Source: Anthoceros angustus (Eukaryota; Plantae; Anthocerotophyta). From it: 64,000 nt of DNA. The stretch's first letter is position 1. Every line of letters starts with the position of its first letter. The position numbers were made by a program, and so were the translations under genes. Below are positions 10,441 through 42,924 of this stretch, one piece after another. The notes beneath the pieces were generated by a model that saw nothing but the letters and a program-made list of their open reading frames with translations, was not told the origin of the DNA and did no database searches. The stretch covers positions 372,545 to 436,544 of the forward strand of contig VJWM01000187.1 of the NCBI GenBank assembly GCA_010909165.1. The letters run 5' to 3'.

Positions 10441-10447
10441 GGATTTG

Positions 10448-11940
10448 TTAACCCACGAGGGCTTTGGACAATGAGTGACTAAGCACAATGATTGTTTTTC
10501 AACGGTAAAGGATTCCACAGTGACCTTGAACCTTGACACCTTACGAGGGGCTTGTCCAATGTTATGAATATATGTAAGTCGCATCCCTCATTTATATACC
10601 CAAGTTTTCCTTGGCCCTTGGGAATCTTCGTGGAATTTTGCATCCCGAAACCCCTAATTACCATGGGCCAAGGAACAATCATCCTTGATTTCGTCATCCC
10701 CTTTTTTTAAATTCGCCCACTTCCTTGAGGTTGATTCCGTCCTTGGACTTTGGCCTCACAAATTTTTCCACAAAGTTCTTCTTTCGAGCACGGACGCCAA
10801 GAGTCCGCTAGCCTACTTGCGCCCTCGGGACGGAGTCTGCCTATTGGCGCACTCGGCACACCCGAGGCCAAGATGCAGTCCGTCGGCCTACCACGATCGA
10901 GCCTCCCACTCCCCAATGCGACGTTCTCTCGGCCCACGGTTTAGGGTTATCGGGCCTACCACTCCCGAGTCGCGTCCTTTCGGCCCTCCCGTGAGACTTC
11001 TCACGGTGAGTGCACGATGGCGTCGTGCAATCCGACCACATGTGGTGAAGCTTGAGAAACCGTTTTAATTTTTTGAAAAGTGTTTCGTAGAAAGGGCCTA
11101 TGTAAATTAGCCTACTTGTACCAAATATCAAAGGCTATCGCATCAAGCTATGTTGGAGCTTGAAATGACAACTTGCATGCAGAGAAGGCAAGTCAACCAA
11201 GAACAACCTTTAGACTAAACCACATCCTTGTAGGCGGTGAAAACCAAGCGTGGGATGAAAACAATCACTACTATTCAAGTTTTGAAAAGGGTGGAGACCC
11301 CATTAAAAGCGTTGAGCGTTTTTAGAGGACTTAACTTTCTCAAGGAGAAGCTCTTTGCCCACCAAAATTTTCAAACCTCCTAGGAGCAAAGATTTGCATA
11401 GTACTAAATTGCAATCAAGAATGTAGGTCGCTAGAATGAAGGTGGCGATAGTCTAAAATCTTATGTGAAACGAGTCATGTCCATGCACACGATGTTTGAT
11501 TTAACGTAAGCAAAAATCTTGTCACTAAAGGACGTGACGAAGGTCTTTTTCCAATCCATGAAGTCCATCGGCAAACCTTTAACTTTGCATGGTCGGGAGT
11601 GTGCATGAGTGTAAGTGTTGGAATGCGTGTTGGCGATGTGCCGTGGAATGCGATGCGGATGTATGGATGGGCGCGGGTCGGATGCATAGGATTCAAACAT
11701 TGACAGTTGGAGGAGTCTCACGGTCGCAGCTATATGACTATGCGACGACATACTCCTCACATCATTCTTGGCACCGGGACAAACATTTGACCCCTTTCAA
11801 AGCATAACAAATTGGCTCATAATGCACACGATCTATTGATACATTTAATTTTACGTAGTGAGAAAAAGTCGACCATGCATGCTAGTATGTGAGCTCAAGC
11901 ACACATGAGCTATTTGATTGAAGGCAAGTTCACGGTATCT
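10448..11940 (-). repeat. TFIIB tandem unit spacer b (promoter region with TATA at ~10590 and downstream-ORF region)
   Basis: Colinear with 22456-23950 over ~1.5 kb, from acccacgagggctttggacaatgag to gaaggcaagttcacgg. Confidence 0.9.
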
Positions 11941-12529
11941 AAAAAGTCACGGCCTTCAAACAGGACCTCATGCGCCCGGTAGTTTTCGGGGTAGTGCGGT
12001 GAATTTTAGAGAGAATCGACCTTTTGGCCATTATTTTACAGAATGTAAAATTCATTACAATATAGTAGAAAACATGCCAAGTGGGGTGAATATGATCTAC
12101 CATCAAGGTGGAAAACAGAGCACTAGAGTAGAAAACATGGCGACCAAGTGAATACCAGTGCGTCTAGTAGAAGCTCATTCTAGAAATCCCACCAAAATCG
12201 CTAATCGACAAAACATTTTCTTAAATAATATTCATGCGGATCCGGGATATACAAAACCAACAAAGAACCCTTTTCTTTGCGAGTTTCCAGATATCCGAAT
12301 TGCATGAAATCTAATTCAACTAATGAAGAGTAAATACCAGATAGAGTGAACTCGCTTCAACAAGAAACCTACAAACAAAACCAAAATTAGCACCCAAACC
12401 GTAATTACGCTGCTACTAGTAAACACTAAAAATAAAACATTGATACTCACCTTATTTTGGGAAATTTCTACAATTATCTGATTGAAAATGTAACACGACC
12501 ACTTGGCTTGATTGGTACTTTACATTATC

Positions 12530-15500
12530 ATAATTGGCAACCAATTGATGAAGAGGACTTGGCGAAATTGACCATCTTCCGCAAGGTCACAACCTAAAAC
12601 AACACAACCATTAATTTTCAATCTAGTAAACTGATTAATAAAAGCATAAAGCTTCGATCCGGATTTTCGCGAGATCGATTGCATATCTCGAGGCATACAC
12701 TCCGTTGTCTTTCCCACGTAATCTCCGAACCTCTTGCTCTTTCTGCTGCGCTTGATTTCTCTTGATGCTTAATATGCTCTTGTCTCCTCTCGCATTTCTC
12801 CCTCTGAATCTCAAGGGCTTTCTCTCTTTGCTTAGAGACTCGTAATTCAAGCTTTCGCCTCTGTCTCTCTATAAGTGCCTCCAAATCCTTTTTGCTGAAA
12901 CTCCATTTCCTGTTTCAATTTGTCATTCTCCAATTCCGTTCTCGGGAGATCGGCAAGCCATTGCTCAAAGCCACATTTCCATTTGATCCACAGTGCAATA
13001 TATCAGGTGCTACCACCACATACATCTGGTTAACTTCGGATGAATCACACTCACTGCACAATGCCCTCCAACGGAGGGCCACCGCATCCACTTCCCTCTG
13101 TGTCAATGTTGAAATGAGGGATGAAAGCCCACTAGTCGAAGGATTTACAATCTGCCAAGAAGAACACAATCAGGAAACTCCAAAATGAATGAAAACAACC
13201 AAAGAACAGCCAAAGAATCAACCTTGTCAACATATGGAATTTGAGTAGAACACCCTGTCGTTGGTGCTAGTGTCCATCTGGATGCCTTGGCAACAGCTTT
13301 CAGAAGGTGCCTGCCAATAAAAACAAGAACCAGTATGATTAAAAAAAACTAACATGGCCAGACTACAACAAAGCAACTTCACAATACTAACCTGAACTTC
13401 AAGACACAGTGGACCACATGGTGCAGAAAAACTCAGTTCAGTCCCAACATTGTTCAGGGGTCTGCTTTCATGATGAATAACAGGAGTGGCCACGAGGAGA
13501 CGACAAATCGAAACAAGTCGGGACACGAGATTTTGACACACAATCCCTACTTGATACAAATCTCAAACACTTACATTACTAACGTGTTGCACTTGCAAGG
13601 GGCCGATCTTGGTGACTAAAATACTATTTCGAGTTACATTCAACACATTGACGGAAGAACACCCTTAAATCATCCCGCATCCGATTGAGTTCTTCATTTA
13701 AAAGCTCGATAAGATCGTCGTTCACGAGAACAAGAACTCTTCGGTACTTTTTTGCTTGACCGAGCGGTCATATCTGCAAAACATATGAGAACGTTAGGAA
13801 CGAGCATACAAAGACTCAAATGTCACAAGCTTTCACAACATATTACCTTGAAAATCCAAATCCGTTTTATGGCGGTCACACTTCTCCCGGCCGAGGGCAC
13901 GAGCCATCGTCAAGCGTGTAATCATCGTTACAGCAGCTCTTATTGGTGTAGTAGCCAACAAGCCCAGCTGCTTCAGCCATGGTCTTCATAAATCTTGACA
14001 GCATTCCTTTTGAAACACGAAGTTTTGCATACCAAGCCTGAACAAAAAAACAAACAGTTAGTAAATAGAAACCACAAAACTCAAGCCCAATAAACCAAAA
14101 ACTTACATTGGATCTTGGGTTATCAATGGTTGAATTGAAGAGAAACCCCTGAATTGACAAATTCTTGTCATGTGCAGACCACTTGGGAGAGTGATCAATA
14201 TGACTTTAAAGGTTTCGATGGCGTCCTTTTCGTAGATCTTTGACCTTTTGAAATGCTCACTCTGGTAGTTCTTCATATCCACTTTGTAATTTTTGAATGC
14301 CGTTCTTCATACACGCAAATGAAGGCGAGCTCATCTGATACATCAAAACATCAAACAAACGGAAACAAAAGACTACCTCTTGAACAAAAGGTCCACTTTG
14401 AATCGATGCAAATGAGAAGTCCCTAATGAGCGGGTTATGTAACTCTTCACCACCTCGAACCCCAAACTGGTCATGCAAAAATATGCACACGCAAACAATA
14501 TAAGCATAAGGGCTCGTTTAAGACCATAAATGAACAATCAAAGTGCACCCCAAAACCAACAATATTACCTTTTAAGCCCCAAATGAGCATTGATGATCTC
14601 TGTGAAAGAATCATCGCTCATCATCATCAAACCTCTTTTCGACATGACACAATCCCAAGGTCCTTGCTGATTTTCATGGGCAATAGGCACCCATGGAAAA
14701 TTCCATGAAACAAGTTGATCGAACATCGAGAACCAAGCCGGCTTTGGTTCGGGATGCACTTGTTAAAATCCGGTTAAACCCACGAAAGAAAGACATCACC
14801 GCGTGAAGATCGGATCACCATGTGAGGAAAGTCGAACTATCAAAATCAACAAGTAAGAAAACATCACTACTTACGTTTACGGAGAAAATCTCCTGTCCTT
14901 GATTCGAACTTGATGGAAAAAGGGTATCGAATAAGATTTAGATCCTTGTAAGGAATATCCTCAAGATATCCCATCCCCTCACTTTCATAAAGGCCACGAG
15001 GCGACTTGACACGCTTATTACGCTTTGACCTATCCTCCCCACCACTCAAAGCATCATTCACAGCTCCCTCGGGGACAAATCACTGCTCTCGAAAATTTCT
15101 TCATCATCAATTTCCTCCATACCCATGGCAAAGTCATCTTGGGACCCGGACACTTTAGCCTCTCAAACATATCGAGCACTTCTTGATCGGGATGACTCGG
15201 TCGGGGAACCACAGCATGGAAAAGCGCCTGTAAAGCATCCTGTTCAAGCACACAAATCTCTAGACTCTAGGCAGGCTTTGGCGGTCACAACCATGGGATC
15301 CTCGTTATCAAGAAATCATTCTCCCCACAAATGGACCCCTCTCGAGACCGGGACATAGTTAGTAATCTCCGCAAGAGGACCTTCAACCAATGCCACAGTC
15401 GTGTCAACCCTTCTCTCTTTCTGCACAAACTCAAGCGTCGAGCATCCTTCTTGGATGAGAAGTGCCTTGGGTTTAGGAATGCCTTTTTGGAACTAAATAT

Positions 15501-15652
15501 GTTCCTTCACATGCACAACACCATCAACTTTACCATCATCCTGCAGTGGATGAGTTGCGAGGAGACGGTGACTTGACTGTGTCTAGTGTGCCATGACTTG
15601 AGGACCCTTGCTTCTTTCCCGGTCCAGGAGTGGGTTTCCTTTTGGGTGCCAT
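12530..15652 (-). CDS. Multi-exon tyrosine recombinase (Crypton/DUF3504-like), copy 2
   Basis: ttttgcag|ATG gives MAPKRKPTPGPGKKQG. Further segments: FLHDQFGVRGGEELHN(L)LIRDFSF (~14445-14490); CMKNG; acceptor then AWYAKLRVSKGMLSRFMKTMAEAAGLVGYYTNKS.R (~13930-14040); VT(G)HK (~13870); intron, then R|YDRS (Tyr at ~13770); C-terminal coiled coil LEALIERQRRKLELRVSKQREKALE. The 3' end is approximate. Confidence 0.88.
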
Positions 15653-18038
15653 CTGCAAAAGCACCGGTGATCAAAACACAAAAAAACATTTGAACCAGTT
15701 AATGAACTTGCAAAAACCAACATGAAAAGACTTACATGGAGATGAATGCTTTCAAATGAGAACTGCTGAAGGGTCTAAAGTTGATTATACCACAATCGAA
15801 AAGAAGGGAGTGTGGGAGATATTGCAGAGACACATCCTTTGATCTATACTGTTAGATTTTGCGATCCCTCCATTTTAAGTTAGAGAAACTTCCATTTTAA
15901 CAAACCCACATACTTCAAACACTCTTTTGCCAATAATATTGATAGACATTAGCCCAAGCGAGCCTTGATCACCGACCAGAAACACAATTTCACACTCGGG
16001 CAAATAGTTATCCCGAGACAGACAGACAATTAGAATGTTGGAAGAGCACCTTTGACAAATTTACCGAAAGCAAGTTTAGTGAGGTGGATATTATGAATGT
16101 CAAGAACATAAAGCAAAAAAAAGGAAAGTGTAAACATCTTACTAAAATCCGAATTCACCCTAAGAATTTTCGCGTGGGTGATGCACAACAAAAGGAGAAA
16201 AAGTTAACAACCCGGCATCGATGAAACAAACATAGCGCAAAAGAACCACGATTGACAACACCAACCATGACCAAGATACAAACCACGAGACATAATGCAA
16301 TAAACAAGAACAAAAGTCGACATAAAACACGAAACTAAACACATCATTAGACAAACACGAAAGTGACTAACAAGCGTGCACACGTTGGTGACGATGCAAA
16401 GACAATTCTGCGATGCGACGGTGGCGAAGTGATCTACCTTCCAATCGCGGACAAAGCGATGGCGCGCATCACAAAAGCAACGACAACGGCGCATGTGAAC
16501 AACTTCAAAAGACAAATACCTTTAAAATGTTTTGCCCAAAGGCGGCGATGCATGGAACAAGCTCTTCGCATGAAAAATAAGAGCATAAGTACAGAAGCGT
16601 AAGAACACCACACGAGTTAAGGGCGCAACACTTTAGAGAGAAAAGTACAAAAGCTGCGTGATTACAAATCGAGTCGAAGCAACGCTCACATGCCTTCGTA
16701 TCCGAGATACAGAACAATGTTTATACTTCACAAAGAAGAACATGCAGATATAAAATCGGACACGCGCGACACATCGGTGATAAACAAACGGACACGCTAA
16801 ACGAGATAAACACCAAGCGAAAACAAACTTATTAACAAGAGCATATATAGAAAATGAAAGCAGAGACGATGAAAACACAAGACCGACAAGACATTACACA
16901 CATCTCAAAGGCACTTCACGTGCGTCTTGAGCGTAAAATAACGCTGTGAACAAGCGGACAACACATTAACATGTAAGGCAATACCACAAAAGCAGTCAAG
17001 ATCTGCGAGCAACATAGTCACACAAAACAAGACTCCAAGTCGGTGGAAGTGATGATGACAAAGCAACAACCAGCGAGAAGAGCAAAATGAGAACACGAGC
17101 AAAGCAGACACAAAAGCACACCGTCCAGCAAGATAAAGCGAAGAGGCAAGTGAGAACAAAGCAGTCTAACAACTTATAGTCGAGCATGAGAGGTTAAAAG
17201 ACACCTTGGCCTTGACAGCGACAAGACGCAAAACCCTTGGCCTCGAACAAAACAACAATAAAAGAAACCTCGAATAACAAAGAAGACCTTGGCCCGGACG
17301 AGCATAAAGCGTAAACATAAAAACACTGAGCTAAGTCAGACAACAACAAGACAAGCTAACACAACAGAATCACGACATGATGCAAACCACAAGGCAGGCG
17401 CAAAGAAAGCTAAACATCTAAAACAAGCTAGGGCGAAATGGACCGACAAAGCGCGCGAGCACCACCTGGACCCAAGAAAAACCAACCGCCTTGGCCCTCG
17501 GACAAAAGCATGAAAGAACTTAAAACGAACAACAAATCGGACGTAAAAGCGTGCGTGGGGACATAGAAAAAGAAGGGAGAGGGCCTTAACCTAAAGGAAT
17601 CCTGGAAGGTCAAGCAAAACCCTTGGCCTCGACAAAACAACAATGAGAAACCTCGAACAACAAAGAAGACCAGGCCCGGACCAAAGCATAACGTCATAAA
17701 AGAACCAAGGAACAACACAACCCTTGGCCTGAAAGCACATCAAAATACAATGAGAACGGACTGAGACTATGAACTAACAAGCAAATCACCATGATGCAAG
17801 CACTACAAGGCCGAAAGCTAAGGCAACTAAAAAGCGCTAGGAGCTGGAGAAGCGCCTTGGCGCAGCGAGCACCTGGACCGCAACAAGTGAGAAACCAACC
17901 CTTGGCTCGGACAAAAGCTGAAACAAAGCTACAACCTTGGAAAGGACGTCAACCGAGGGACTAGAAAAGAGGAGTAGAAAACGCAGCAAGAATACCGGAA
18001 GGTCCCACCGAAAAACACTGAAAGACCTCCGTGAACCC

Positions 18039-18060
18039 TTATATAGACCCCAAACCCTAA
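18039..18060 (-). promoter_or_regulatory. TATA box plus telo-box, copy 2
   Basis: cccttatatagaccccaaaccctaa; position conserved in all three copies. Confidence 0.6.
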
Positions 18061-19825
18061 CCCTTCTCTCTCTGCGCCGCCACTCTCTCTCTAGAACCAA
18101 ATTTGAAAATACCAAACCTACTCGAGCCGGACACCCAACAACCTAGGTCGCCATTCGTTGCCGCGCCCTCCTCAAACCTAGTCTTGTTCCAAACCTAGCC
18201 ATAACCTAACCTAATTTCCGAACCTCTTCGTGCGTCGAACCTCCTGAACACCAGCCACGGCTCTTGAGCATCCGAACCCTAATTCATGTCTTGAGCACTC
18301 ACGCCTCGGACTCACTTCTATCGCCCACCAGTCGCTGCTCCCGCCCGCCCACGCCGCCCTGTGTCACTCGCCCTCAGCTCCGCTAGTTCCCTTGTTCCAT
18401 CCTCGAGTGTTCCTCCCACCTCCCTACCGCCCTGCCACAGCTGCCTCTTTCTCCACGTCCCTTGCTCACCTCGTGAGGCTGCGTCTTCACCTATGAACGC
18501 CTTTCGCCCGCAACGCGTTTCTCTTTTCGTAGTGAATAGCGAGTTTCTCTCATCCGAGCCCGAGCGCTCAACACACTCTGCTGGCTTCTCCCTTTGGTTC
18601 CAGGCGGTGCAAGCAATACCTCATCATCATTGGCGGCCTCAGGTGAAGAGCACGTGAAGACGTTTGCGATTGGCAAGGTGAAACTTACGCCGAGAGTTTG
18701 TTTTGCCTTTGAAATTGTTTGTTGTCTTTTGCTTTGTGCCTATGCTCATGCTTGACTCTACCGAGATACCACAAGAAGGTTCGAACGGCGAGAGTTGGCT
18801 CCGCAAGAAAATGCCGATTTTCCCGACGGGCCCTTTCCACTCACCCTGCTTGCCGCTCACCGCAGCGCCAAGGAGACAAAAGAGGTCTCCCTTGGCGTCC
18901 TCCGTGGGTACGACAACACTCTTGCGTGTGTGCGTCTTTTATTCTTTTCTTCGCCTCTAACACCCGGCGTCTCGCTCTTGCCTCAGTCTTTGCTTGTGAA
19001 TAGCTTATCGCTGCTATGTTTGCTTGCGCTTTCTTACCTTGAATGTTGCTGCGAGAAAACCTGACTCCTCTACACACGGCCTTGAGTCCAACATGCAGAA
19101 GACATCGAGCAGTAACAAGCCTACGGTGCGAACTTATCTTTCTACGCTTCGTTTGTTTTCAAAGTCGCTACTCGACCGAAAACGCTAGCAAGTCTTGATA
19201 GTTCTCGATGCTTGGCGTTTCTCACTCTCTTTATTCTCGCTTAATCTCGGTTAATCCTCCGGACGTAACCCGTTCAGTAGTGACTCCGCGCGCGGTGCGG
19301 GCCACACACATGCAAGAGCAGCGCGCTCTGTCTCAACCTATAGAGGCTGCAGTCGCATGCAGCCTTTCCTTAGGCATACAGTTGTCCTTAAAACTCAGGT
19401 TCAAACTGTAGCTAGAGTCAGCATTGGTCATTCAGCAATGTTTGAGTCAACATCGCGTCGTGACAACAACTTGTCAACTTTATGCCGGTATAGCATGGGA
19501 ACATGCGCTGTTGGTGGCATGCATCGGCGTTTGCAACTTGATATTGGATCACTCGACGAAGTTCAAAAGTCCGTAATCATATTTTATTTCTAACCGTGTT
19601 TTCCTAACTATTCGTTGGAAGTGAAATTGCATGTCCGAATATCTTAACGAGACATGAAAACCGGTTTGAGCGTAAGTCATATAGTCTTTGTGTTGCCGTA
19701 GTATATTTTATCAGCTGAAAGTCGCGGCATGCGACAACTTGCACCGAACGACAACTGCGGAGATGGCGCAAACACGTGCATTTTAAAAGTTCAAGTTATT
19801 CATTGGCACGGCTGCTTTTATTCTA

Positions 19826-21320
19826 ATGGCATCCGAGAATGAGAAACAGCGATGAAATGGTCGACATCCAAGAAGGTAATGATCATTTACGCCTATAAAT
19901 CCATTTTTGGTTGACTCATGGTGATTTTTCCGTAAGTGACAATAGTAAAGACCCAACAAACCTTAACTGGCGATCAACAACAATGTTCCCACCCATGGGG
20001 ATCCAGGATATGATGACTGAAGTTCAAATCCTCTCATTGAGATACGAAGATAGTTGAGAAAGGTAATACATTTCAATTAAACTAATTGAATCTCCATGAA
20101 CATTTCTAACTCGATATCTTTGATAGATTACTACGGAGCACACTATGTTCACATCAATGGACAAAAAGGACTTGCTCCTTTGCCGGTGCAATTGGAAAAA
20201 ATTAAAAAGGTAAAGACTTGGTTCGCAACTTTCTAGGGACAATATGTATCGCAACTCACTTTAGTTGTATATGGTTACAGGATATTAAGAAGAATCTCAA
20301 CAACTCAATTAGAGTTGGAAACAATGACTACGGGGAGGTTTAATGGACAAGATCTCAATTCATCGATTTTGGAGGTAAACAACTACACTATTATGTGTAT
20401 TTATTTGTAATAAATACTAATTTCCTTGTTCTGATCTTCTTGAACAAGTTGCAGCTAAGGAAATTAAGGAGAAAATTGAAGCAATGGATGACAAAATCAA
20501 CAACACGACCATCTTTCATCGTAATTGCTGTTGTATGTTTGTAATTAATAATTAGTATATTTGTAAGTAGTATATAATACAATCTTTTCAAAAGGACAAA
20601 AGAGGAAAAAGGAGTCAAGATAATGCACCAACGTATGGACCATCGAAGAATTTGCGATTTTGGAAAATGGATGGATAACTTTCGTATCCACAAGTCTTCC
20701 AAGATTTTAAATAGATATGTTCCCATTTGGGAACATAGCCTCAAAGATCCACAATCGCAATGAAGATGGGTCGTGAACCCTAGAAGACATGGAGATCCAA
20801 AAAGTAAGTGTTATCGGTTTATGTTATTCTTAGTATAGTTTATTTGAATCGGTTTATGTAGTACTAATGAAATTTTGAGTTTTGGTAGAAATATCGCCAT
20901 TGAAAATAAGGAGCTAAAACCATGCACTTGTTGACTCGATGGAAGATCCGAAACTACAAAAACATTCAAAAGGTTAGTTCAGTAACAATTTATTTATGTA
21001 AACAAGGAAAATTGATATTCGTATTTTTTAAATATGTAAATTCTAACGTTGATACCTCTTTGCGAGCATCACATTTCCGTAGTGTGGGAAATCTTCACAG
21101 CCATTGCCTCACATTAGTGAGAAAGGTATTCGAGCAAGATCTTCTTGACTTGAGATGGGTAAAATATTAACTGCATTTTTGTTTGTAGTTATCGAAGAAT
21201 CAAAAGGAGTTGTTTGCACTATTTGAGGTTAGTACATCATATTTACAGGTGAAATTGAATATGTACGATATCTAACATTTACCATTGCCGCTTATTCCGT
21301 TTGACGAAATTTTGAAATGA
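19826..21320 (+). CDS. Companion multi-exon protein of unknown function (~300 aa), copy 2
   Basis: ATG GCA TCC GAG AAT. About nine short exons with GT-AG introns, colinear with 39301-40847. Confidence 0.65.
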
Positions 21321-21712
21321 TTAACTTTCTTCTGGACCGTATAATGAACAAAGAAAGAAGTATTATTCAAGACGAGCGGATCCGAAATCGCGGTGTACAC
21401 CCCTTCAACGCCCGAGAAGAAAGTTAGAAAGGATAAATCGTAAAAGCGAAAGGCAAACGTAACAGCGTGAAAGTGAAAAACTCAAGTGCGAAAGTGGCTG
21501 AAGAGAGAGAAAAAGACTTTTAAAGTGGTTGCACAAACAGCGATTCTAAAGATCTTGAGACCTCCGCCTCGGTGGTCGAGTGGGAGGCGTCTCGGCCCCC
21601 GGCTCCGCCGCCGAGAGGCAGGCGCTCGTCGGGCGCCCGGCCTACGGTCTCGGCCTCGGCCTCGGCCGTTCTCGCGTAGCCCGGCGTCCGTTCTAATAAT
21701 ATAATCTAAGGC

Positions 21713-22455
21713 TCAATTCACGAGCTCTTCCAAACAAAAATTCCCACTTTGCAAAAACCATGCATCTATAACGGATGCATGCGGACGCAAAATCGGTAAG
21801 TGCTCTTGAGCGTACTCACCGCCACATTACATCGTCGGCAATGCTCTTGGCCGGCAGTTCCTCGAGATCTTGAGACCATGTATATAACTCCGGTGGCCGG
21901 AGCGGATGTAATTTTGTTTTCGAGGCACTCCACTTGAAAAAGCTCTCGCACTTTCCTTGCATTTCGAACTGGAACAAAAGTCTGCAAAATCCTTGGGCGG
22001 ATAGCTTTGGGCCAGCGCGGATTTCCTCGGGTCGTGACTCGTCATGACCCTCATTTCTAGGAGGTCCACCAACTTCCCAACAACCCCTGGTCAAGGCTAT
22101 AGCTGCAGTACCCAAAGCCTCGTAGATTTCTTGCATTGAGGTCCTTTCTTCTTTACAAGCCACGTACATAGCGGCGCCACATCGTCTTCACAACTCCCTT
22201 TTCTCAAGACCCTCGCCTTCTTGTACAAGGAACTTGCCAATACACGTGTTGTGCACAATTCTCATTCTTCTGCGAGCTCAAATCCTATCAAAGCGGATGT
22301 CATTGCCGTGAGTGGGAACCCGTGCATTCGTGTTCCGCGTGTGGATGCAACCCATTTTCCTTTGCGCTTTGTAGTGCGGATGCAAGTGGTTAGGCCAGCA
22401 TGGTCGAGCAAGTCATCCGTGTATCGTGGGGCGTCCCTGCTATCTGCTCCATCAA
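21713..22455 (-). CDS. TFIIB-like protein, copy b (intronless; zinc ribbon deleted)
   Basis: YTDDLLDHAGLTTCI; RVLASSLYKKARVLRKG; AAMYVACKEE..EIYEALG; GF(L)QTFCS; SAPATGVIYMV; KSIAD.CNVAVSTLKSTYRF.RPHAS..AWF. These correspond to the B-linker and both cyclin folds of TFIIB. Confidence 0.85.
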
Positions 22456-23950
22456 TAAATCCACGAGGGCTTTGGACAATGAGTGACTAACACAATGATT
22501 GTTTTCTCAAGCAGAGTAAAGAATTCCCGCGGCTTTGGACAACCTTGACACCTTACGAGGGCTTGTCCGTTTATGAATATATGTAAGTCGCATCCCTCAT
22601 TTATATACCCAAGTTTTCCTTGGCCCTTGGGAATCTTCGTGGAATTTTGCATCCGAAACCCCTAATTACCATGGGCCAAGGAACAATCATCCTTGGATTT
22701 CGTCATCCCTTTTTTTACTTCCTTGAGGTTGATTCCGTCCTTGGACTTTGGCCTCACAAATTTTTCCACAAAGTTCTTCTTTCTCGAGCAGGGCCTTGAG
22801 TCCGCTAGCCTATGCGCCTCGGGGACGCCGGAGTCTGCCGTCCTATTGGCGCACTCCGGCACACCCGCTGAGCCAAGATGCAGTCCGTCGGCCTACCCGC
22901 AGATCGAGCCTCCCACTCCCCAATCGACGTTCTCTACGGTTTAGGGTTATCGGGCCTACCACTCCAGTCGCCGTCCTTTCGGCCCTCCTGAGACTTCTCA
23001 CGGTGAGTGCACGATGGCGGTGTCGTGCAATCCCGACCACATGCGGTGAAGCTTGAGAAACCGTTTTAATTTTTGAAAGTGTTTCGTAGAAAGGGCCTAT
23101 GTAAATTAGCCTACTTGTACCAAATATCAAAGGCTATCGCGTCAAGCTATGTTGGAGCTTGAAATGACAACTTGCATGCGAGAAGGAAGCGAAGTCAACC
23201 AAGAACAACCTTTAGACTAAACCACATCCTTGTAGGCGGTGAAAACCAAGCGTGGGATGAAAACAATCACTACTATTGAAGTTTTGAAAAGGGTGGAGAC
23301 CCCATTAAAAGCGTTGAGCGTTTTTAGAGGACTTAACTTTCTGAAGAGAAGCTCTTTTGCCACCAAAATTTTCAAACCTCCTAGGAGCAAAGATTTGCAT
23401 AGTACTAAATTGCAATCAAGAATGTAGGTCGCTAGAATGAAGGTGGCGAGATAGTCTAAAATCTTATGTGAAGCAGTCATGTCCATGCACACGATGTTTG
23501 ATTTAACGTAAGCAAAAATCTTGTCACTAAGGGCGTGGGACGGCGAGTCTTTCAATCCATGAAGTCCATCGGCAAACCTTTAACTTGCATGGTCGAGTGT
23601 GCATGAGTGTAAGTGTTGTTGGGAATGCGTGTTGGATCTTGGTGGAATGCGATGCGGATGTATGGATGGGCGGGTCGGATGCATAGGATTCAAACATTGG
23701 ATTAATGGAGAGTCTCAGTCACGGCGGCTATATCGACTATGTGCGGCGACATACTCCTCACATCATTCTTGGCACCGGGGACAAACATTTGACCCCTTGG
23801 CAAGCATAACAAATTTGGCGTCATAATGCACCAGTCTATTGATACATTTAATTTTACGTAGTGAGAAAAAGTCACGACCATCTTGCATGCTAGTATGTGA
23901 GCGCACACACACTGAGCTATTTGATTGAAGGCAAGTTCACGGTAGCATAA
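22456..23950 (-). repeat. TFIIB tandem unit spacer c
   Basis: Uninterrupted 1.5-kb spacer between two TFIIB copies. ataatctaaggctcaattc at 21701 recurs at 23947, a period of ~2245 bp for this deleted unit. TATA gggtatataaat at ~22600. Confidence 0.9.
23217..23890 (-). CDS. Putative second intronless ORF downstream of TFIIB (unknown function)
   Basis: 112-aa open frame LSDKIFAYVKSNIVCMDMTASHKILDYLATFILATYILDCNLVLCKSLLLGGLKILV. It extends upstream via VKGLPMDFMDW and MVMTFSHYVKLNVSID in the other copies. Confidence 0.4.
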
Positions 23951-23958
23951 TCTAAGGC

Positions 23959-24340
23959 TCAATTCCACGAGCTCTTCCAAACAAAAATTCCCACTTTGCA
24001 AAACCATGCGGTACTATAACGGATGCATGCGGACGCAAAAATCGGTAAGTGCTCTTGGCGTACTCACGCCACATTACATGCGTCGGCAATGCTCTTGAGC
24101 GAGGCAGTTCCCTCGAGATCTTCTGGACCATGTATATAACTCAGCGGTGGCCGTGGGGAGCTTCGGATGTAATTTTTGTTTTCCGAGGCACTCACGGCTT
24201 GAAAGACTCTCGCACTTTCCTTGCGCATTTCGAGCACAGAACAAAGCAGTCTTTGCAAAAATCCTTGGGCGGATAGCTTTGGGCCAGCGGATTTCCTCGG
24301 TCTGTGACTCGTCATGCAGCCCTCATTTCTAGGAGGTCCA
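23959..24340 (-). pseudogene. TFIIB-like copy c, 3' half (split by Gypsy-1 insertion)
   Basis: GPKLSAQGFLQ..; LKSIADACNVA. Joins 43562 at ggaggtcca|ccaacttccc, compared with the intact sequence at 22060-22085. Confidence 0.8.
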
Positions 24341-24535
24341 GGTCCAGCGCAAGCAGCGTGACCTCGCAATTTGCCTACCAGCCCTGCTTACAAAGCTAAG
24401 TCACTAAACACACTGCGATCTCCTTGGCCTTGGCCGGGAGCAACAATCCTAGCCTTAATTGTCCTTGGCCTATGACCAAGGGCAAGGCTACAAAAGGTGG
24501 GTCACTTTAAGAGGCAGGCCCGAGGCACGGGCAGG

Positions 24536-25155
24536 TGAATCAAGCTGGAAAATTCTCCCAACGACAATGCAAGCGAACCACAAGAACCTCTAGGAGACAA
24601 AGACACGGCGGGGACAGTATGGTGTCTATTAGAACAAGACAAACATCAACAATCCAGAGAATCCATGGTGCCTACATATATAGGCAAAACCCAGAGTTCT
24701 CGATGAAGTGTCCACCGTGTCGATGGTGGGCACTTTATAATCCTACTTTCCTTGGCCTTGAAATAATAATATTTTATGTTTATGACCTATTCGTCCTTTT
24801 CCTTGATTTATGATTTTTATGTATTTTCTAATATAAATCTATCTATATATCGTCATTAACCGCGCCTTACATGCATACCATGCATAGATAGCATGCCATG
24901 ACACATCACACACATGTCCACATACATCACATGTCATCCTTCATCTCCATACGTATGCATACATGGCACACATGCATACATGGCATACATGTCATGTGCA
25001 GGCCATCCATGGGCCATGTACATGACATCATCAAGCACTTGACGCCGGGGCTTATGCGAGATGCTCGATCGATATCTAGTCATTTGATTGGGGCTTATGC
25101 CGGGATGCTCTAGTATATCCGGTCATAGAGTCTTAGGTGCTCTGTTTCCCATACG
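24536..25155 (-). repeat. LTR of Gypsy-1 (3' LTR)
   Basis: Close copy of 42925-43545. TG...CA-type ends; minus-strand TATA at ~24668-24675. Confidence 0.85.
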
Positions 25156-25399
25156 ACATGGTGTCAGCGCGCCCGTATGCATGCCTACCTGCTCTACAAA
25201 GCTAAGTCACTAAACACCGCACACTGCGATCTCCTTGGCCTTGGCCGGGGCAACAATCTAGCCATAAATTGTCCTTGGCCTATGACCAAGGGCAAGGCTA
25301 AAAAGTGCCTAAGAGAGGCCGGGGCCAGCAACCCACAGGAAACTTGGAGGCCTAGCCACCGGTTTCCCACAAATTGTCTAGACCATCTTGGCCTAGAAA

Positions 25400-28300
25400 A
25401 CAAACAACTACTTACCACGTCCCCACCAGCGAGCGTAGCTTGTCCAACAGCGGTGGTTACGCGAGGAGGAATGGCGTCATCTTGAGATCCTCATCATCGA
25501 TGGGTCTTCTTGTGCCTCACCTTAATCGTAATCTCGGCGGCTTGAATCCAGAGAGATCAACTGTTCTTCCACAAAGCGCTTACATGCATCGATGAAAGGG
25601 ATGCCATCACATCCGGCATCCATGTCTCATAAGCTTCGTGTTGGATAATTGTAACTTCGAAGTGTAGATGTCTGTGGCGAGCCTCACGAGCAGTTGAAAG
25701 CATTCTTCTCCTCTCGAGTCCAAGCCGGATCAACATGAGGGGTCCTCAATTTGTTGGTCGAATGTAGCTGAGGCCACCTACCACATGATGCCTGTCCGGA
25801 TGGTGGAAAACTCGAAACCACTCTTTGAGAAAAATCAAGCGGCGAGGGTATGTGTCCCCGTCAACGAATTCTGGCAACCTCATCCCATCAAACCATTGAT
25901 GCATTTGGAAGTGATGCTGCAACTTCCTCCATGCACCCTCGCTTGTCGGGCCAGTGGCGCTTGTGACCCGGTGGAGCTCAAACAAATCCGGTGTTCCTGG
26001 GATAATGCTCCACCCTACTTTCATGATGCTCCTCAACTGATGAAGATGTGAAGCTCATCATAACTTCCTGGAATACCGTTCGGTCATCTTGGCGGAGTAG
26101 AAGATGCTCCACTTACGCATCTTCATCATCCACGAGGTCCCATGCCTCACAAACCTTGCTTGAGTTGGCGGTCACACACACGGAGGCACGTTCCAGACCT
26201 CCTCGCTTGTTGAGACCTCCTCCATGGCTGAGAAAAGGTGCAACCACAGAATTTTTTCACGGCGTCTGGCGACAATCATGGTGTACAGGCGCTGCGCTCC
26301 TTGCTCAGTGGGCGGTTGCTCACTGCTCACGTGCGAGGCGTGGTGCTCTGCTGCATCGACCACCGCTCCTTGATTGGGACCTTTCTCCCAAACTCTTGCG
26401 GCTTTCCATGTTCGTAGGATGCTTGCGTGATCGTCCCCTCTTGCGCTTGATTGGTGGCACTTCCTCTTGGCCTTCACCTTGAATGTGGATAGGGCAAGAC
26501 TTTTCGCCTTCTCCTATGCACGTGTGACGGACCAGGCGCTCCCCATCCGCTCAAGCAAAACCACCTTTAGAAACACGGTGAGGAATTCTCAACAGCTTGG
26601 TTCTGTGCATGCATCGATATCCTTCGTAGCTCTACCCGCTCCTTGTTTCGGTCGAATTAGACCCTTGTCGAAATCGATCCTACATGCCTCATAATCCTCT
26701 CTTCACAATTCCTTGCACATGAAACGGCTTCTCAACAACTCTGTCGCCCCTTAGCATGTGCGATCCCATGAATTTGGCCCCAAGCATCTTGTGTCCTTCT
26801 TCAACTGCTGCACATCAGCTTCTTTGACTTCCAACGTGTGTGAATTTAAGACAACCATCGGTACCACCTTCAAAGAGCCACGTTCACACTTAGCACATTA
26901 CGGTGCTCACATAGCCATTCTCCTTCGGAACCCGTCTTGGTTTGAGGCAAAGCAGATGGTAACCACGTTACACATAGCAACATGAATTCTTAAATGGGTT
27001 GTGTGCCCACACTCCTCCGGCAACTGCTGGTGGCGTCAGTCGAGGCATTCGTGTATCCGGTCGGGCAAATGGCATGGAGCCAAATGCTTCATGTGTTCCT
27101 TGCACCTTCGCCATCTCTTCCTTCAAGTTCAACCACACCTTGCTCACCAACACAACTCTCGATAAGCCTCCTGTCAACATCTAACGTGCTTGCGGGCTGT
27201 CTTTGCAAGTACGTAATCTCGGATGCAAACTTGCGGGCTTTGGGCTTCCACGAGCCCCAGCGTATAGCATACCTGGTCCGATCTTTGGGCCAAATTGTCC
27301 ATAGCCATGGGAAGAATTCTTTGAAATACTTACGCTCGGCTTGAACTGTCCAAGCACACATTTGCATCTTTGCTCCATCAAGGATGGAGTAAGTGTCCTT
27401 CACCACATTCGGCAACACTGCGTTGCGTCCGAATAACAAAAGTATGGACTGAAACTTCCAAGAGGCTTGCACACCCACGTGACCCCAACACGATGTAAGG
27501 AGCAATTCATCCCAACACTTGGGCTCCACTGTCGGATTTCCTTAGTGCATCCTTGAAGGTTTGCACTAGCCTTTCGCGGGCCATCGGCTGTGGATGATCC
27601 TCGATGTCCTCCACAGTGATCAATGAGACTCTGCCAGCAAGGTCTGAATTCACCTCGAAACTCGTTACCACAGTGCATGAGCACCTCTGCGGCTCCCAAA
27701 TCGGTGAGCACACTGCAAAAGCTCTGCGGTGTATGCGAGGTTCTCAGTAACGCCACTTCAACCCACTTAGAGAAATGCTCAATCATGACCATGCAATGTC
27801 GGTTACCTTGCTTTGTGAGGAAGCTCGGCATAAGGTCGACCATCTAAAAATAGCCCCACGATTGGTAGGGGTGCAACACCACATCACAGGTGTTAAATCT
27901 GCTTTGAGCATCACATGCAGCACTTAGCCACCACCTTCTCGACATCGCATACATCCACGGCCGCGTACTCTTCAACATGTGGTGTGTCCTCTTCACACCA
28001 AAGTGGCCAAGGGTTTCGTGCACCTTGGTCACTATGCCCACTCTTTCCTCGGGACTTGGTACTTTCCTTACGAGTTCTCCTTGTGATGTGCTCACCATCT
28101 TCCCATGAGTATCGGCCGCGCCTTGAGTTTAGCCAAGCTGCTTGATCATTCCGGCCTGCCTTCCTTGACAAGCAGGCTTGAGGATGTCTCCAAACATCCA
28201 GCGGACTCTGTCGGCACATGTCCTTCTTCATGATCATCTATCACGGCCATGAGTGCCATGAAGCTGGGTGCACCATCTGTGCCCCTCATCTCGAGCTCTG

Positions 28301-31300
28301 TGACATCCTTGTCACTTTCCGGATTTATACGCATTGTGATGTACCTTGCACGCCCTGCACGATCTCCATATCGTACTCGAGATGGCGGCCGCCCCAGCTA
28401 GCTTACCACTCAACTTCATGTTGGTCATGATAATGAAGTGGCTGTGATCTGTGACCGATTAAAACGCCTTCCATACAGATAGACCACGAAATGCGAATCG
28501 CCCATACTGACAAGACACTCTCCCTCATATGAGGAGTAGTTCACTTGAGTTGTTAGATCGGCTTGCATAAGCTATCACTCGCTCAACACCATCGCACCAT
28601 GTTGTGACAACACGCTCCAATTCCGATGCTCCTGCATGAAAGGGTGATCAAAATTCGGCTGGCCAACATAGGCTTCTCGCCAGCGGTCCAAGATCTTGCC
28701 AAGCCAACTCTCGGTCTTGGTCCCATTTCCACATGTCTTTCTTCAGCTCATACAGAGGTTTACATGTGGGCGAGGTCCTTCATAAACCTAATAGTTCACC
28801 AAACCCGGAAGGCTCTAAGAGCAGCTACATCCTTTGGTCTAGGCATTTGCATCACTGCACCTTAGGTGAGGCATGATGCCTCCTGGTACTATCATGCCAG
28901 ATCGTCTGGGAAAGCAAACTTGCATTTCTTAGGATGAGCTTTCAAACCCGAGGACCTCGTAGCAATATCTCTAGATGCTCCATATGTTCTTGATTGTCTC
29001 ATGAAGACCGGATATCATCTATGTAGCAACGCACAAATGGCGACCTCGATCATTCTTTGGAAATATATAGAAGCATTTTCTTCAGCATTCTCCCACTCCC
29101 AAAGCTGGTCCTTCCCCAGGTGTCTTGCACTTGTCCGCTCTTCAATCACAATTTGGTTGAAGCAGCGAAGTCCAAGGCGTAAAGAACTTTGCCTTACCTA
29201 TGGCATCGAAAATCTCGTCAGTAGGCATGGGCGTCCATAGGAGTCACCTCGTTTAGAGGTCGGTAGTCGCCACACATCCTCCTGTCCTTCCATTCACCGT
29301 TCTCATCCTTCTTGAGGTAGGGGCCAGTCCGACATATTGAGAGCTTGATTTTCTTATCAACCCGCTCAACAACTCTTGACGTTTGTCAACAATCTCCCAT
29401 TCTGCGAGCGGCGTGCCTCCTTGAAGACGGCTCTTCATGAGTCGTCACTACTTGAACTTGATCTTCTCATACCTACCCTCCTTCCAACGAATGCAAAAGC
29501 ACCCTTGTGTTTTTCTCAAGCATGTTGATGATTTTCTTATCTTCCGGCTCACATCTTACGCAATGTGCCATACATGAACCTCTTCGTCACACTCTTGGTG
29601 GGCGATTCGGTATCCACGGCCATCTTGAATCTCTCCCTGACTCATCTTCCTCTGCCTTAGGAACCTCTTTATCCTGTAGTTGGAGGAAGGCTTTCGCTTC
29701 CCTTGCACGCAAGTTGGAATAAACTGTGCTTACCACACCTCGGGTAAGTCAAATGCATCCAAGCATCCCTTGCAGTTACATGCCCATGGTGCGAGTGTCC
29801 TTCTTGGCAAAGCCCATCGCTTGCTCGCGTTCCTCAACATTGAGCTCTCAAGCTCATTCCCTTCAAATCCGAATCACACCATCTCCTCCCGTGCGAAGGC
29901 ATAAGATTGCGGTGTGCTCACGAGTTGGCCATGCCCTTCGGCTTCCCCTACTCGATTCACGGGGTAAAATGGCAACTTGTCCATCCTCTTCACTGAGCAC
30001 CTTCCCAACTCTAGGATATCATCCACAACCTTCCGGAGTTGTCAAATTCTGTCTTTGTCGAGCACCTCCGGTCCAGCCACATTTGTCCGATGCTTCTGCT
30101 GTGTGCATATGAGCCACGCGTCCATGATCAACTCATTGCGAACCACGCCCGAATCTCTTCATACAGGCCCTAACGTTTGTCCATGGACACACATTCTCCG
30201 AATGTACCAACATCGTGGATTCGCAATCTGGACTTCTCGCGTGATTAAATGCGAGCTCGGCCAACACGCCTTCACCTTTGCCTCACTGCTGTCGAAAATG
30301 TCTTGCATTCCCATCCGCGATCGGATATCCACGGGCTTGACAAGGCTTCTAGCGCGCTTCCCCAGCGAGTTCACGCAGGCAGCTGCTCGGCGCCTCGGCG
30401 CTTCCGCTCGGTAGTGTTGGATCTTGCGAACACGAATTCGACCCTAGCGCGGAATCTTCTCATCCTTTTCCACGCAGTATATTGCCGTATCTTGACGCCA
30501 CGCAACACCGCTTCGCCACTGCGATTCTGGCGAGCTCCAACAAATGGATGCCTTGACCCACCTTCCATCGTACTGAGCCGTCGATCGTCGATCTCCGACT
30601 TGGCGGGCCTCATACAGGATCGACCTCTCGGGACATGTGTCATGAGATTCCATCGATCCTCCTTCCTTTGGTTCTCTCGAACCTCTCGCTTGATCCAAAT
30701 ATTACGGCGCACAACCTTAAGCACACCTTACGCTCTCTTGGCATCTCCGGAGAGGATAACTCCCGTTTCCTCCACATCTCATGTCGATGCTCACGAGACC
30801 GTGGCAATCATGGCGGCCCGTCATCCTCGTCTGCTCTTGCCACCACTCCTATTCATCCTTAGAGGAATTGTGCAACATCGTGAAATCTCCTCTCCACCGA
30901 ATGGTCAGCAGAAAGCGTGCAAGGGATCAACCCCATGGCGGGACGGTGAGTTCCGTCACCCCAAGACATCATATGTCTTTGCGTGACCAAACATCTCACT
31001 TCAACGATGCCGGCATCCTTCGTGTGCTTCAATTCAATCTTCACGGGCCTCCTCGTCATTCCCGGTACATTCCTTGGTACTGCGGAGGTGGTGATGTTCA
31101 CGCGTCGCTCGGAGCGAGCTTGTGTCCATCTGACTTTAGTGCCTCCTGCACCGTGCTCCCAGTGATTGGATCCGCTCCACGTGTCTACAAGTCGTTCTTT
31201 GCATAGCCATCAAAGGTCACGTCCGTGTTATCAATCATGGCAACACCTCCTTCACCGCTCCTCGCATCGATGCTCGCCACACAACCGCCATACTAGGGAG

Positions 31301-31371
31301 AGATCCCGCGATTCAAGCTCCTTTCGCCATTCTCGCATGATGTTTTGAAGGTTTTCACTCCAAGCCATCAG
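25400..31371 (-). pseudogene. pol: Gypsy-1 pol: protease, RT, RNase H, integrase, possible C-terminal chromodomain (frameshifted)
   Basis: RT: MPTDEIFDAIGKAKFF, KAHPKKCKF. RNase H: NYSSYEGECL. Integrase: HETLGHFGVKRTHHML and MVMIEHFSKWVEV. Weak chromodomain-like VVCFLGQDGLDNLWE at ~25350-25410. Confidence 0.88.
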
Positions 31372-31949
31372 AAGTCGCTCTGCCTGGGGCCTCTCGACGC
31401 CCATTGGTTTTTTTCGGTAGTGTGTGAATTTTAAGAAAGAGAATCAACTTTGGCCATTATTTTACAGATAGTAAATTCATTACAATATAGTAGAAAACAT
31501 GCCAAGTGGGTGAATATGATCTACCATCAAGGTGGAAAAGAGCACTAGAGTAGAAAACATGGCGACCAAGTGAATACCAAAAGGCCTAGTAAAATCGCTT
31601 CTAGTAATCCCACCAAAATCGCTAACTGACAAAAACATTTTCGTTAAATAATATTCATGCGGATCCGTGATATACAAAACCAACAAAGAACCCTTTTCTT
31701 TGCGAGTGATATCCGTAATTGCATGAAATAAATTCAACTAATGAAGAGTAAATACCAGATAGAGTGAACTCGCTCAACAAGAAACCTACAAACAAAACCA
31801 AAATTAGCACCCAAACCGTAATTACGCTGCTACTAGTAAACACTAAAATAAAAACATTGATACTCACCTTATTTTGGGAAATTTATCGTACAATTATATT
31901 GAAAATGTAATTTTCACACCACTTGGCTTGATTGGTACTTGTACATTAT

Positions 31950-34900
31950 CATAATTGGCAACCAATTGATGAAGCCGAGGACTTGGACGAAATTGACCAT
32001 CTTCCCAAGGTCACAACCTAAAACAACACAACCATTAATTTTCAATCTAGTAAACCGATTAATAAAAGCATAAAGCTTACCGATCCCGACGGATTTTCGC
32101 AGATAGCAGCTTGAAATATCTCGAGGCACATCCTTCTCGCCTGTGTCTTTCCCACCGTAATCTCCGAACCTCTTGCCGCTCTTTCCGCCGCTTGCTTGAT
32201 GCTTAATATGCTCTTGTCTCCTCCGCATTTCTCCGCCTCAATCTCAAGGGCTTTCTCTGCTTAGAGACTCGTAATTCAACCGCCGCCTGCTCTCTATAAG
32301 TGCCTCCAAATCCTTTTGAACTCCATTTCGTTTCAATTTGTCATTCTCCACCCCTGCTTGGAGATCCGTGCTCAAAGCCACTTACATTTCCATTTGCAGT
32401 CACAGGCTGCAATATATCCAGAGGTGCTACCACAGCCACACTTCTGTCCTGGTTAACTTCAGATGACTGATCACACTCACTCTGCACAATGCCCTCCAAC
32501 AGAGGGGCCACTGCATCAACTTCCCTCAGGGCTGTATCAATGTTGAAATGAGGGACAGTAAGCCTGCTTACACTAGTCGAAGGATTCACAATCTGCCAAG
32601 AAGAACACAATCAGGAAACTCCAAAATGAATGAAAACAACAAACAAACAGCCAAAGAATCAACCTTGTCAACATATGGAATTTGAGAACACCGTTGGTCC
32701 GCTAGTATCCATCCGGATGCCTTGGCACTTTAAGGTGCCCGCCAATAAAAACAAGAACCAAGATGATTAAAAAACTAACATGGCAGACTACAACAAAGCA
32801 ACTTCACAATACCAACGAACTTCAAGACACAAGTGGACCACATGGTGCAAAAACTAGTTCCCCAACATTGTTCGTGGTCCGCTTTCATGATGAATAAGAG
32901 GGGCCAGAGGAAAGACCGACAAATCAACAAGTCGACACGTGATTATACACAAGTCCCTACATACTTGACAAATCTCAAACACTTACATTACTAACGTGTT
33001 GCACTTGCAAGGGACGCGATCAGCCGACTAAAATACTATTTCGAGTTACATTCAACATCTGGAAGAACACCCTTAAATCATCCCGCATCCGATTGAGTTC
33101 TTCATTTAAAAGCTCGATAAGATCGCTGCTCACTGTGAACAAGAACTCTTTGTACTGTTTTGCTTGACCGAACGGCCATATCTCGCAAAACATATGAGAA
33201 CGTTAGGAACGCATACAAAGACTCAAATGTCACAAGCTTTCACAACATATTACCTTGAAAATCCAAAGATCCGCTTTATGGCCAACACACTTCTCCCAAA
33301 GATCGAGGGCACCGAGCCATCGTCAAACGTAATCAATCACGTTACGGCAGCTCTTATTGGTGTAGCCAGCCAAGCCAGCCCATGGTCTTCATAAATCTTG
33401 ACAGCATTCCTTTTGAAACACGAAGTTTTGCATACCAAGCGAACAAAAAACAAGCTTAGTAAATAGAAACCACAAAACTCAAGCCCAATAAACCAAAAAC
33501 TTACATTGATCTTGGGTTATCAATGGTTGAATTGAAGAGAAACCCCGAATTGACAAATTGTCATGTGCACCACTTGGGAGAGTGATCAATAAAAGGTTTC
33601 GATGACGCCCTTTCGTAGATCTTGACCTTTTGACTAAATGCTCACTGGTAGTTCTTCATGTCCACTTTGTAATTTTTGAATGCCGCTTCATACGCAAATG
33701 AAGACGAGCTCAATACATCAAAACATCAAACAAAAAGAAAACAAAAGACTACACCCATCGAACAAAAGGTCCACCGAATATGCAAATGAGAAGTCCCTAA
33801 TGAGCAGTTATGTAACTCTTCACCACCTCGAACCCCAAAACCCGGTCATGCAAAAATATGCACACCGAAAACAATATAAGCATAAGGGCTCGTTTAAGAG
33901 ACCATAAATGAACAATCAAAGTGCACCCCAAAACCAACAATATTACCTTTTGAGCCCCCGCCCAAATGAGCATTGATGATCTCGTGAAAGAATCACGCTC
34001 ATCATCGTAAATCAACTTCACCTCTTTTCGACATGACACAATCCCAAGGTCCTTGCCGATTTTCATGGACGCAACCACGCTCGGGACCCATGGAAAATTC
34101 CATGAAACATGTTGATCATCGAACATCGTAACCAAGCCGGCTTTGGTTCAGATGCACTTTGTTAAACCGTTAAACCACGAAAGAAAGACATCACCGCACA
34201 AGTGAAGATCAAGAATCACCATGTGAAGGAAAGTCGAACTATCAAAATCAACAAGTAAGAAAACATCACTACTTACGCTTCGGAGAAAATCTCCTGTTGT
34301 CCTTGATTCGAACTTGATGGAAAAAGGGTATCGAATAAGATTTAGATCCTTGTGAGGAATATCCTCAACAGTATCCATCCGACCCACTCACTTTCATAAA
34401 GGCCCCGAGACTTGACACCGCTTATTCCGCTTTGACCTATCCTCCCCACCACTCAAAGCATCATCATTCCCCTCTCGACGACGGTCAAATCCGCTCAAAA
34501 ATTTCTTCATCATCAATTTCCTCCATACCCATGGCAAAGTCATCTTCGGGACCGCACACTTTAGCCTCTCAAACATATCGAGCACTTCTTGATCGTGGAT
34601 GACTCTGTGGTCGAACCAACAGTATGGAAACGCCACAGAAAGCATCTGCTCAACCAGACACAAATTTCTAGACTCAGAGCTTTGGCGACTCACAACCATG
34701 GGATCGTTATCAAGAAATCATTCTCCCCACAACCGGACCTCTCTCTCGACATCGGGACATAGTTAGTAATCTCCAAGAGGACCTTCAACCAATGCCACAG
34801 TGTCGAGTGTCCACCCTTCTTCTCTTCTCGACAAACTCACCGCACGTCGAGCATCCTTCTTGGATGAGAAGTGCCTTGGGTTTAGGAATGCCTCTTTTGG

Positions 34901-37475: not shown

Positions 37476-37498
37476 TTATATAGGCCCCAAAACCCTAA
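37476..37498 (-). promoter_or_regulatory. TATA box plus telo-box, copy 3
   Basis: cttatataggccccaaaaccctaa. Confidence 0.6.
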
Positions 37499-42922: not shown

Positions 42923-42924
42923 GG

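Follow-up and report, generated by a model that had tools for sequence, protein, structure and literature searches.

A tandem array of decayed TFIIB-like genes in Anthoceros angustus: the probable fossil flank of a macrosatellite

Introduction

General transcription factors are normally encoded by low-copy, highly conserved genes. What, then, is a TFIIB-like gene doing in tandem repeats in a plant genome? The question is raised by a stretch of 64,000 nucleotides from Anthoceros angustus (Anthocerotophyta; assembly GCA_010909165.1, contig VJWM01000187.1, forward-strand positions 372,545 to 436,544), which is called the window here and from whose first letter all coordinates are counted. An original prediction, made from the letters alone, had described a tandem array of a divergent, intronless TFIIB-like gene with a unit of about 2.5 kb, had taken it for an amplified retrocopy or an element-borne factor, and had raised the possibility of a selfish or specialised transcription system.

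Plant TFIIB-like factors have expanded into five clades, TFIIB, BRF, Rrn7/MEE12, BRP1/pBRP, and BRP5, and tandem arrays of TFIIB-like genes are not mentioned in the review that describes them (PMC7865254). We conclude here, with a probability of roughly 0.75, that the locus is a fossil, that is, the old, neutrally decaying, transposon-invaded flank of a TFIIB-like macrosatellite, and not a working or selfish transcription system. This conclusion is carried by a map of the repeat unit, by the insertions that break it up, by homology with TFIIB, and by a ratio of nonsynonymous to synonymous substitution rates (dN/dS) that is neutral, each of them observed in the window.

The Repeat Unit and Its Array

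A reference unit of 2,452 bp was rebuilt from its best-preserved parts (23947-24340, 43562-44130, and 22458-23946), guided by a self-comparison of the window. Positions 1-963 of this unit hold a minus-strand gene and its upstream region, and positions 964-2452 are spacer. It aligns at 73-92% identity to every unit-derived segment listed in Table 1 (the 5' half of copy C and its spacer as one alignment, 43560-45009, and an inverted scrap as two, 58360-58585 and 58587-58723). The window holds five gene remnants and six spacer remnants of this one unit of ~2.45 kb, all in the same orientation with the sole exception of the inverted scrap. The predicted tandem array is thus borne out by the unit map, although the predicted number of at least six remnants is not; there are five gene remnants once the two halves of copy C are counted as one.

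Junctions between units are kept at 248/252, 23946/23947, and 62546/62549, and in inverted form at 58585/58587. Only 23946/23947 is an undisturbed head-to-tail join between two substantial units, where the loss of ~190 bp from the 5' end of copy A brings the spacing down to 2,246 bp. In other words, what is repeated head to tail is a multi-kb unit holding a whole gene, the defining feature of a gene-bearing macrosatellite. The unit also seems to be highly repeated in the sample: in its DNA run the word depth is 300-1500, as against 5-22 for the rarest contigs, which suggests a copy number on the order of a hundred, a rough figure that has no proper single-copy baseline behind it.

One of the two main gene copies, copy C, lies in two parts separated by 19 kb. 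The join that had been proposed between them (44075-43560 to 24340-23947) is correct, since copy A runs uninterrupted across the same site (...GGAGGTCCACCAACTT...) and both junctions (24340/43560) carry TCCA, which resembles a target-site duplication. Upstream of the gene, the predicted TATA box was found as TATATAAA at 44269-44276, ~195 bp 5' of the ATG at 44075, and its 23-nt context is identical in three units (22588-22610, 10579-10601, and 44257-44279). Downstream, an ATTAAA ~100 nt past the stop is conserved in three units. The spacer contains no Pfam domain, and searches of the unit for RNA genes, including tRNA genes and Rfam families, returned nothing; telomere repeats were also looked for and not found. 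No terminal repeats, direct or inverted, belong to the unit: the sole direct repeats in 21650-24400 are the tandem unit itself, while a primer-binding site or polypurine tract at the unit borders was not searched for.

Units that average 86-90% identity reach 92-100% in two blocks of the spacer, namely the TATA region and a block of ~250 bp lying ~600-850 bp upstream of the TATA box. They could be due to constraint, gene conversion, or differences in mutation rate.

Homology with TFIIB

Reference open reading frames (ORFs) were retrieved by degenerate DNA patterns for two motifs, and the results were then checked. One set consists of 73 archaeal TFB ORFs and a second of 62 eukaryotic ORFs without introns, and the TFB profile is matched by 60 of the latter. 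When two of the eukaryotic ORFs served as queries in protein searches, the results were TFIIBs named as such at their source, all of them animal or fungal. The query was a composite of 305 amino acids (aa), assembled from ten in-frame pieces of copies A and C with an X at each break.

Against the profile of the 62 eukaryotic ORFs, the composite scored 26 bits (E 2.8e-10) in a single alignment (profile 30-338 to composite 5-302). A broader TFIIB profile gave 33.1 bits (E 1.6e-12), again in a single alignment (profile 62-331 to composite 26-299), covering the two cyclin-like repeats, and the archaeal TFB profile gave 6.4 bits (E 1.9e-4). As a control for the choice of frames, a frameshift-tolerant profile-to-DNA aligner was applied blind to raw DNA. 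Copy C scored 28.0 with the broader profile, as against 15.5 +/- 1.8 in 400 dinucleotide shuffles (Gumbel P 1e-4), and copy A, which is without the N-terminus, gave P 0.015. With the 62-ORF profile, copies C and A scored 26.4 and 20.9, and the maximum among 228 other stretches of the window was 22.4. Finally, three piece-alignments compared with an 18-sequence TFIIB alignment by hhalign gave P values of 4e-4, 0.02, and 0.0056 at columns 40-63, 141-175, and 211-266, in the order expected for TFIIB; our own arithmetic puts the Fisher combined P at ~7e-6. Profile searches, which the original prediction had named as one of its tests, do return TFIIB, both with the composite and in the blind alignment. 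On these comparisons the homology is real, though weak.

Piecewise searches were much less telling. The only Pfam match of the 32-aa piece at 22092-22187 (minus strand) was PF00382, the TFIIB repeat, at E 0.11 and 13.0 bits, as against a cut-off of 23.6. No piece reached a curated Pfam threshold, and the ORFs and the other clean in-frame pieces had no match. PDB sequence searches with pieces and with two- and three-piece tiled profiles did not return TFIIB, and none of 1.84 billion protein representatives matched a 98-position N-terminal profile. The metagenome contigs searched lacked an exact 24-mer of the gene, and the look-alikes that a language model returned for a 55-aa piece were uninformative.

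The predicted domain order, with the end of a Zn ribbon, a B-reader, a linker, and two cyclin folds, is colinear with the profile, and the order of the hhalign matches agrees. TFIIB motifs stand at the right places: CGLVLE, E.R.F.ND, LL..G.TT.I, Y.AC.E, FCS, the IY of the second fold, and the TY of its last helix. That the gene is intronless also holds, as one colinear alignment extends over ~920 bp. In the B-reader and linker, LEYRKFDND ... DDLL ... GLTTCI aligns to SEWRTF ... NPLL ... L.T.I (48% identity over 23 columns, the first of the hhalign matches above). The N-terminus is kept by copy C alone, where the first cysteine pair reads C-L-E-C, the second is reduced to a single cysteine (A-L-W-C-G), and a frame break lies between them. 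The altered B-reader (EYRKF) of the original prediction can be seen, but in this single decayed copy, so that it is not assignable to the family.

How far has the gene departed from TFIIB? On the same broader profile the composite scores 33 bits, archaeal TFBs 159-251, and held-out TFIIBs at least 416, and a true TFIIB drops to ~33 bits only when 60-70% of its residues are randomised. By this measure, archaeal TFB is closer to canonical TFIIB than the gene is. A difference of ~10% between copies is too small for this gap in score, and we therefore infer that the gene that founded the array was already very divergent before amplification.

Decay, Selection, and Expression

The original prediction had joined these pieces into a protein of ~300 aa. 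Its peptide strings are present, all on the minus strand, but they do not form an ORF; they lie in different frames and copies, and nine or more frame changes are needed to join them. The longest pieces that stay in frame are of 51-57 aa, and no copy in the window codes for the full length. Truncation, deletion, or splitting by a transposon has affected every copy: the halves of copy C lie 19 kb apart, copy A has a deletion of ~190 bp that removes the coding part for the Zn ribbon and B-reader, and the other three remnants measure 61-226 bp.

Of 698 sites aligned between copies A and C, 10.3% differ, and 27 indel runs, 24 of them of a length not divisible by three, separate the two copies. Their dN/dS is 0.81 over 184 gap-free codons, which a binomial test does not distinguish from neutral (p 0.63). 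Divergence between the terminal repeats of the 19-kb insertion (85% identity) is about the same as between A and C (87%), and copy C was probably dead during most of the time since it separated. No RNA contig from the sample's one RNA run fell on the stretch. The checks proposed at the outset for intact copies and selection thus yield, for the window, zero intact copies, a ratio not different from neutral, and no RNA in the one run, and the suggestion of a selfish or specialised transcription system is unsupported here.

Insertions and Other Features of the Window

The insertion that splits copy C has direct terminal repeats of ~620 bp (24534-25154 and 42923-43544) that are 85% identical. Directly after the left repeat stands TGGTGTCAGCGC, which starts with TGG, like a tRNA-Met primer-binding site. 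Pfam scans of its longest open stretches found no domain, and its identification as long terminal repeat (LTR)-retrotransposon-like is drawn from its ends alone. An extra 193 bp (24341-24533) ahead of the left repeat is a partial duplicate of 25188-25304.

A second element, X, of ~9.8 kb, occurs at 11941-21700 and 31373-41132 and in part at 382-4423, with 78-81% identity among copies. One copy sits exactly at a boundary of the TFIIB unit, whose empty site is seen at 23940-23950, and the 19-kb insertion has another nested within it; the long ORFs of X had no match in Pfam scans. A third insertion, of 2.6 kb, occurs at one and the same unit position in two units (45010-47613 and 59375-61996), and therefore a block already carrying it must have been duplicated later. 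No terminal inverted repeat (TIR), LTR, or clear target duplication was found in it. This insertion carries purine-rich, microsatellite-like tracts and, ~11 nt ahead of its 3' end, a perfect hairpin (GGTTCCGGG/CCCGGAACC), and it looks Helitron-like.

Two direct repeats of 220 bp (52449-52668 and 58138-58359), 95% identical and 5.7 kb apart, lie to the right of these, and the right one abuts the inverted TFIIB scrap at 58360. The pair may be a younger small LTR element that truncated the scrap. Local tandem repeats are also present: units of ~200 bp at 7286-8735, and a GC-rich unit of 30 nt (~9 copies, 89% matches) at 9221-9484, inside an ORF of 233 aa that has no Pfam hit. Despite the dense mobile elements, Pfam matched none of the 20 longest open stretches tested in the window (116-245 aa). 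Together with the gap-rich short-read matches described below, this silence suggests either pervasive small-indel noise or very old decay across the window.

Table 1. Array remnants and insertions in the window (copies and unit positions refer to the 2,452-bp reference unit)
Feature	Position	Strand	Remarks
Spacer tail, leftmost unit (unit 2199-2446)	1-248	-	90.6% identity to reference unit; array extends past the left edge of the window
TFIIB-like gene copy, 3' end (unit 1-126)	252-379	-	Truncated at 382 by a copy of X (9.8 kb)
Spacer and upstream region (unit 952-2450)	10438-11937	-	Conserved TATA 23-mer at 10579-10601
Mobile element X, 9.76 kb	11941-21700		Inserted exactly at unit boundary
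TFIIB-like gene copy A (unit 1-738)	21701-22420	-	Linker, both cyclin folds, C-terminus; many frame breaks
Spacer between copies A and C	22458-23946	-	TATA 23-mer at 22588-22610; ATTAAA ~100 nt past copy C stop; no Pfam domain found
Copy C, 3' half (unit 1-394)	23947-24340	-	Second cyclin fold and C-terminus
Insertion of 19 kb that splits copy C	24341-43559		Direct terminal repeats, TCCA flanks, nested element X
Copy C, 5' half (unit 393-~908)	43560-44075	-	ATG at 44075, CxxC, B-reader-like LEYRKF, linker, first cyclin fold
Copy C upstream region and spacer	44076-45009	-	TATATAAA at 44269-44276
2.6-kb insertion at unit position 1839	45010-47613		Second occurrence at 59375-61996
Inverted scrap across unit junction (unit 1-248 and 2286-2448)	58360-58723	+	Reference-unit alignment; C-terminal peptide pieces present
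Rightmost unit	58729-62609	-	Spacer 58729-59374; 2.6-kb insertion 59375-61996; spacer 61997-62546; first 61 bp of next gene 62549-62609

Origin of the Locus

We propose that the ancestral unit of ~2.45 kb would have consisted of one intronless, highly diverged, minus-strand TFIIB-like gene with a TATA-bearing upstream region and a downstream ATTAAA. Gene and spacer would have been amplified jointly, head to tail, presumably by tandem duplication and unequal exchange. The units would then have drifted to their present divergence of 9-27%, evolving neutrally and taking at least four mobile-element insertions and one 5' deletion. Of this old, broken-up segment, 21713-24340 is the stretch that has survived best. 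With no unit left that codes for the full length, the locus would do nothing as a transcription factor.

Several observations weigh against this account. The strongest E-values depend on a composite whose frames were picked by eye, and single pieces of the gene are each insignificant in Pfam, in PDB, and in the library of 1.84 billion proteins. Most of the gene is covered by no more than two copies, which makes the dN/dS ratio a single comparison. Conservation of the TATA region (92-98%) exceeds the average of the spacer, and this could reflect past constraint or homogenisation. Low-depth short-read contigs from one DNA run differ from the window by 1-5 substitutions but by 1-8 gap letters per ~80 nt, so that part of the small-indel load may be assembly noise and not real lesions, and the one RNA run is small and of unspecified tissue. 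Because of the possible indel noise, frame breaks alone are no proof of death; our verdict is based on the large disruptions together with dN/dS.

The same indel noise, with the TATA 23-mer identical in three units and the conserved ATTAAA, would suit a reading in which one or more of the copies here still work as genes of a specialised family of TFIIB paralogues and the frame breaks are assembly errors. We give this very little credence in view of the 19-kb split of copy C, the loss of ~190 bp for the Zn ribbon and B-reader from copy A, and the reduction of the other three remnants to 61-226 bp, and the dN/dS of 0.81 and the lack of RNA in one run point the same way. It is extremely improbable, in our judgement, that the resemblance to TFIIB is a product of chance and the unit a non-coding satellite. 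Such a reading would fit the failure of every piece to reach a curated threshold and the empty searches of PDB and the protein library, but it has to contend with an end-to-end colinear match, a frame-blind P of 1e-4, three independent profile-profile matches in the right order (combined P ~7e-6), and a best-conserved piece for which TFIIB is the only Pfam family returned.

Mobile elements offer another origin. The unit might itself be, or ride in, such an element, for example a non-autonomous LTR element with a captured TFIIB fragment, and the array might have arisen by recombination between elements (LTR-internal-LTR-internal). Tandem structures are known for LTR elements of this type, and the window is rich in mobile elements; nevertheless, we regard this origin as improbable. 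Neither direct nor inverted terminal repeats were found in the unit (the search did not extend to a primer-binding site or polypurine tract at its borders), its spacer is without a Pfam domain, and nothing marks it as the element-borne gene of the original prediction. The remnants all belong to one colinear series, and none stands isolated with flanks of its own. An LTR-bounded unit carrying the gene as retrotransposon cargo was considered and rejected, as the LTR-like pair at 24534-25154 and 42923-43544 flanks the insertion inside a gene copy and not the unit. The retrocopy that had been proposed fares no better: no marker of one was found, and the three units with the conserved ATTAAA have no A-run of eight or more within 300 nt past the stop. 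A viral origin, in which a TFIIB of a giant virus (nucleocytoplasmic large DNA virus, NCLDV) was integrated into the plant genome and then amplified, would account for the extreme divergence of the gene on the profile (33 bits, as against 159-251 and at least 416), and NCLDV relics are known in bryophyte genomes. Yet viral contigs were scanned three times, if with little sensitivity, and neither relatives nor an NCLDV TFIIB could be confirmed; the unit has no other viral genes, and the C-terminal ...RPHASVI..AWF would resemble plant TFIIB. We consider a viral source highly unlikely.

Comparison with Known Systems

The gene shares with the TFIIB family (Pfam TF_Zn_Ribbon PF08271 followed by two PF00382) its domain order and a length of ~305 aa, and like TFIIB it ends just past the second cyclin fold, without a BRF-type extension. 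Lineage-specific paralogues are a known theme among plant TFIIB-like factors (PMC7865254). Unlike the TFIIB members tested, however, the window gene is far more divergent, by the scores given above, and all its copies are broken; it is intronless, and it is amplified as a macrosatellite and not in the form of dispersed paralogues. A processed pseudogene would likewise be intronless and decay neutrally. The window gene differs from a retrocopy in that the TATA-bearing upstream region was copied along, in that a poly(A) tract is lacking, and in that gene and 1.5-kb spacer appear as a tandem duplication and not as repeated retroposition.

A gene-bearing macrosatellite is known in human D4Z4, whose 3.3-kb unit contains the intronless DUX4. 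The two arrays are alike in having a few-kb unit, repeated head to tail, with one intronless gene of transcription-factor type and a promoter-like region, and the D4Z4/DUX4 type would be the nearest known architectural analogue, although the gene family and the kingdom are different. In contrast to a homogenised array, the units in the window are old (73-92% identical) and filled with transposons.

Could the entire family be a plant equivalent of D4Z4/DUX4? It might then comprise at least ~100 units of a fast-evolving TFIIB paralogue that is silent vegetatively and used at a narrow stage, such as gametangia, spores, or sporophyte; or it might consist of structural repeats, for example centromere-associated ones. 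We put this forward as a tentative idea, possible but doubtful, and if it were true, the window would be the old, dead edge of such an array. It should be mentioned that the Anthoceros genome paper reported no centromeric tandem repeats but searched periods only up to 2,000 bp, so that a unit of 2.45 kb would be missed.

Significance

No description of a TFIIB satellite was found in the literature searched. A TFIIB-like gene in the form of a multi-kb satellite, unmatched in a library of 1.84 billion proteins, would be an unreported form of the expansion that TFIIB-like factors have undergone in plants. What is new here is an old, decayed layer of the family, a dN/dS that is neutral, and a statistical test, made independently, of the homology with TFIIB. 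On present evidence, this decay weighs against reading the family as a working "selfish transcription system". The window shows an old layer, in which diverged, neutral units have been invaded by several transposon families. Because these units are old and diverged, turnover within the family would have gone on over a long period, and selection does not maintain its old copies at least.

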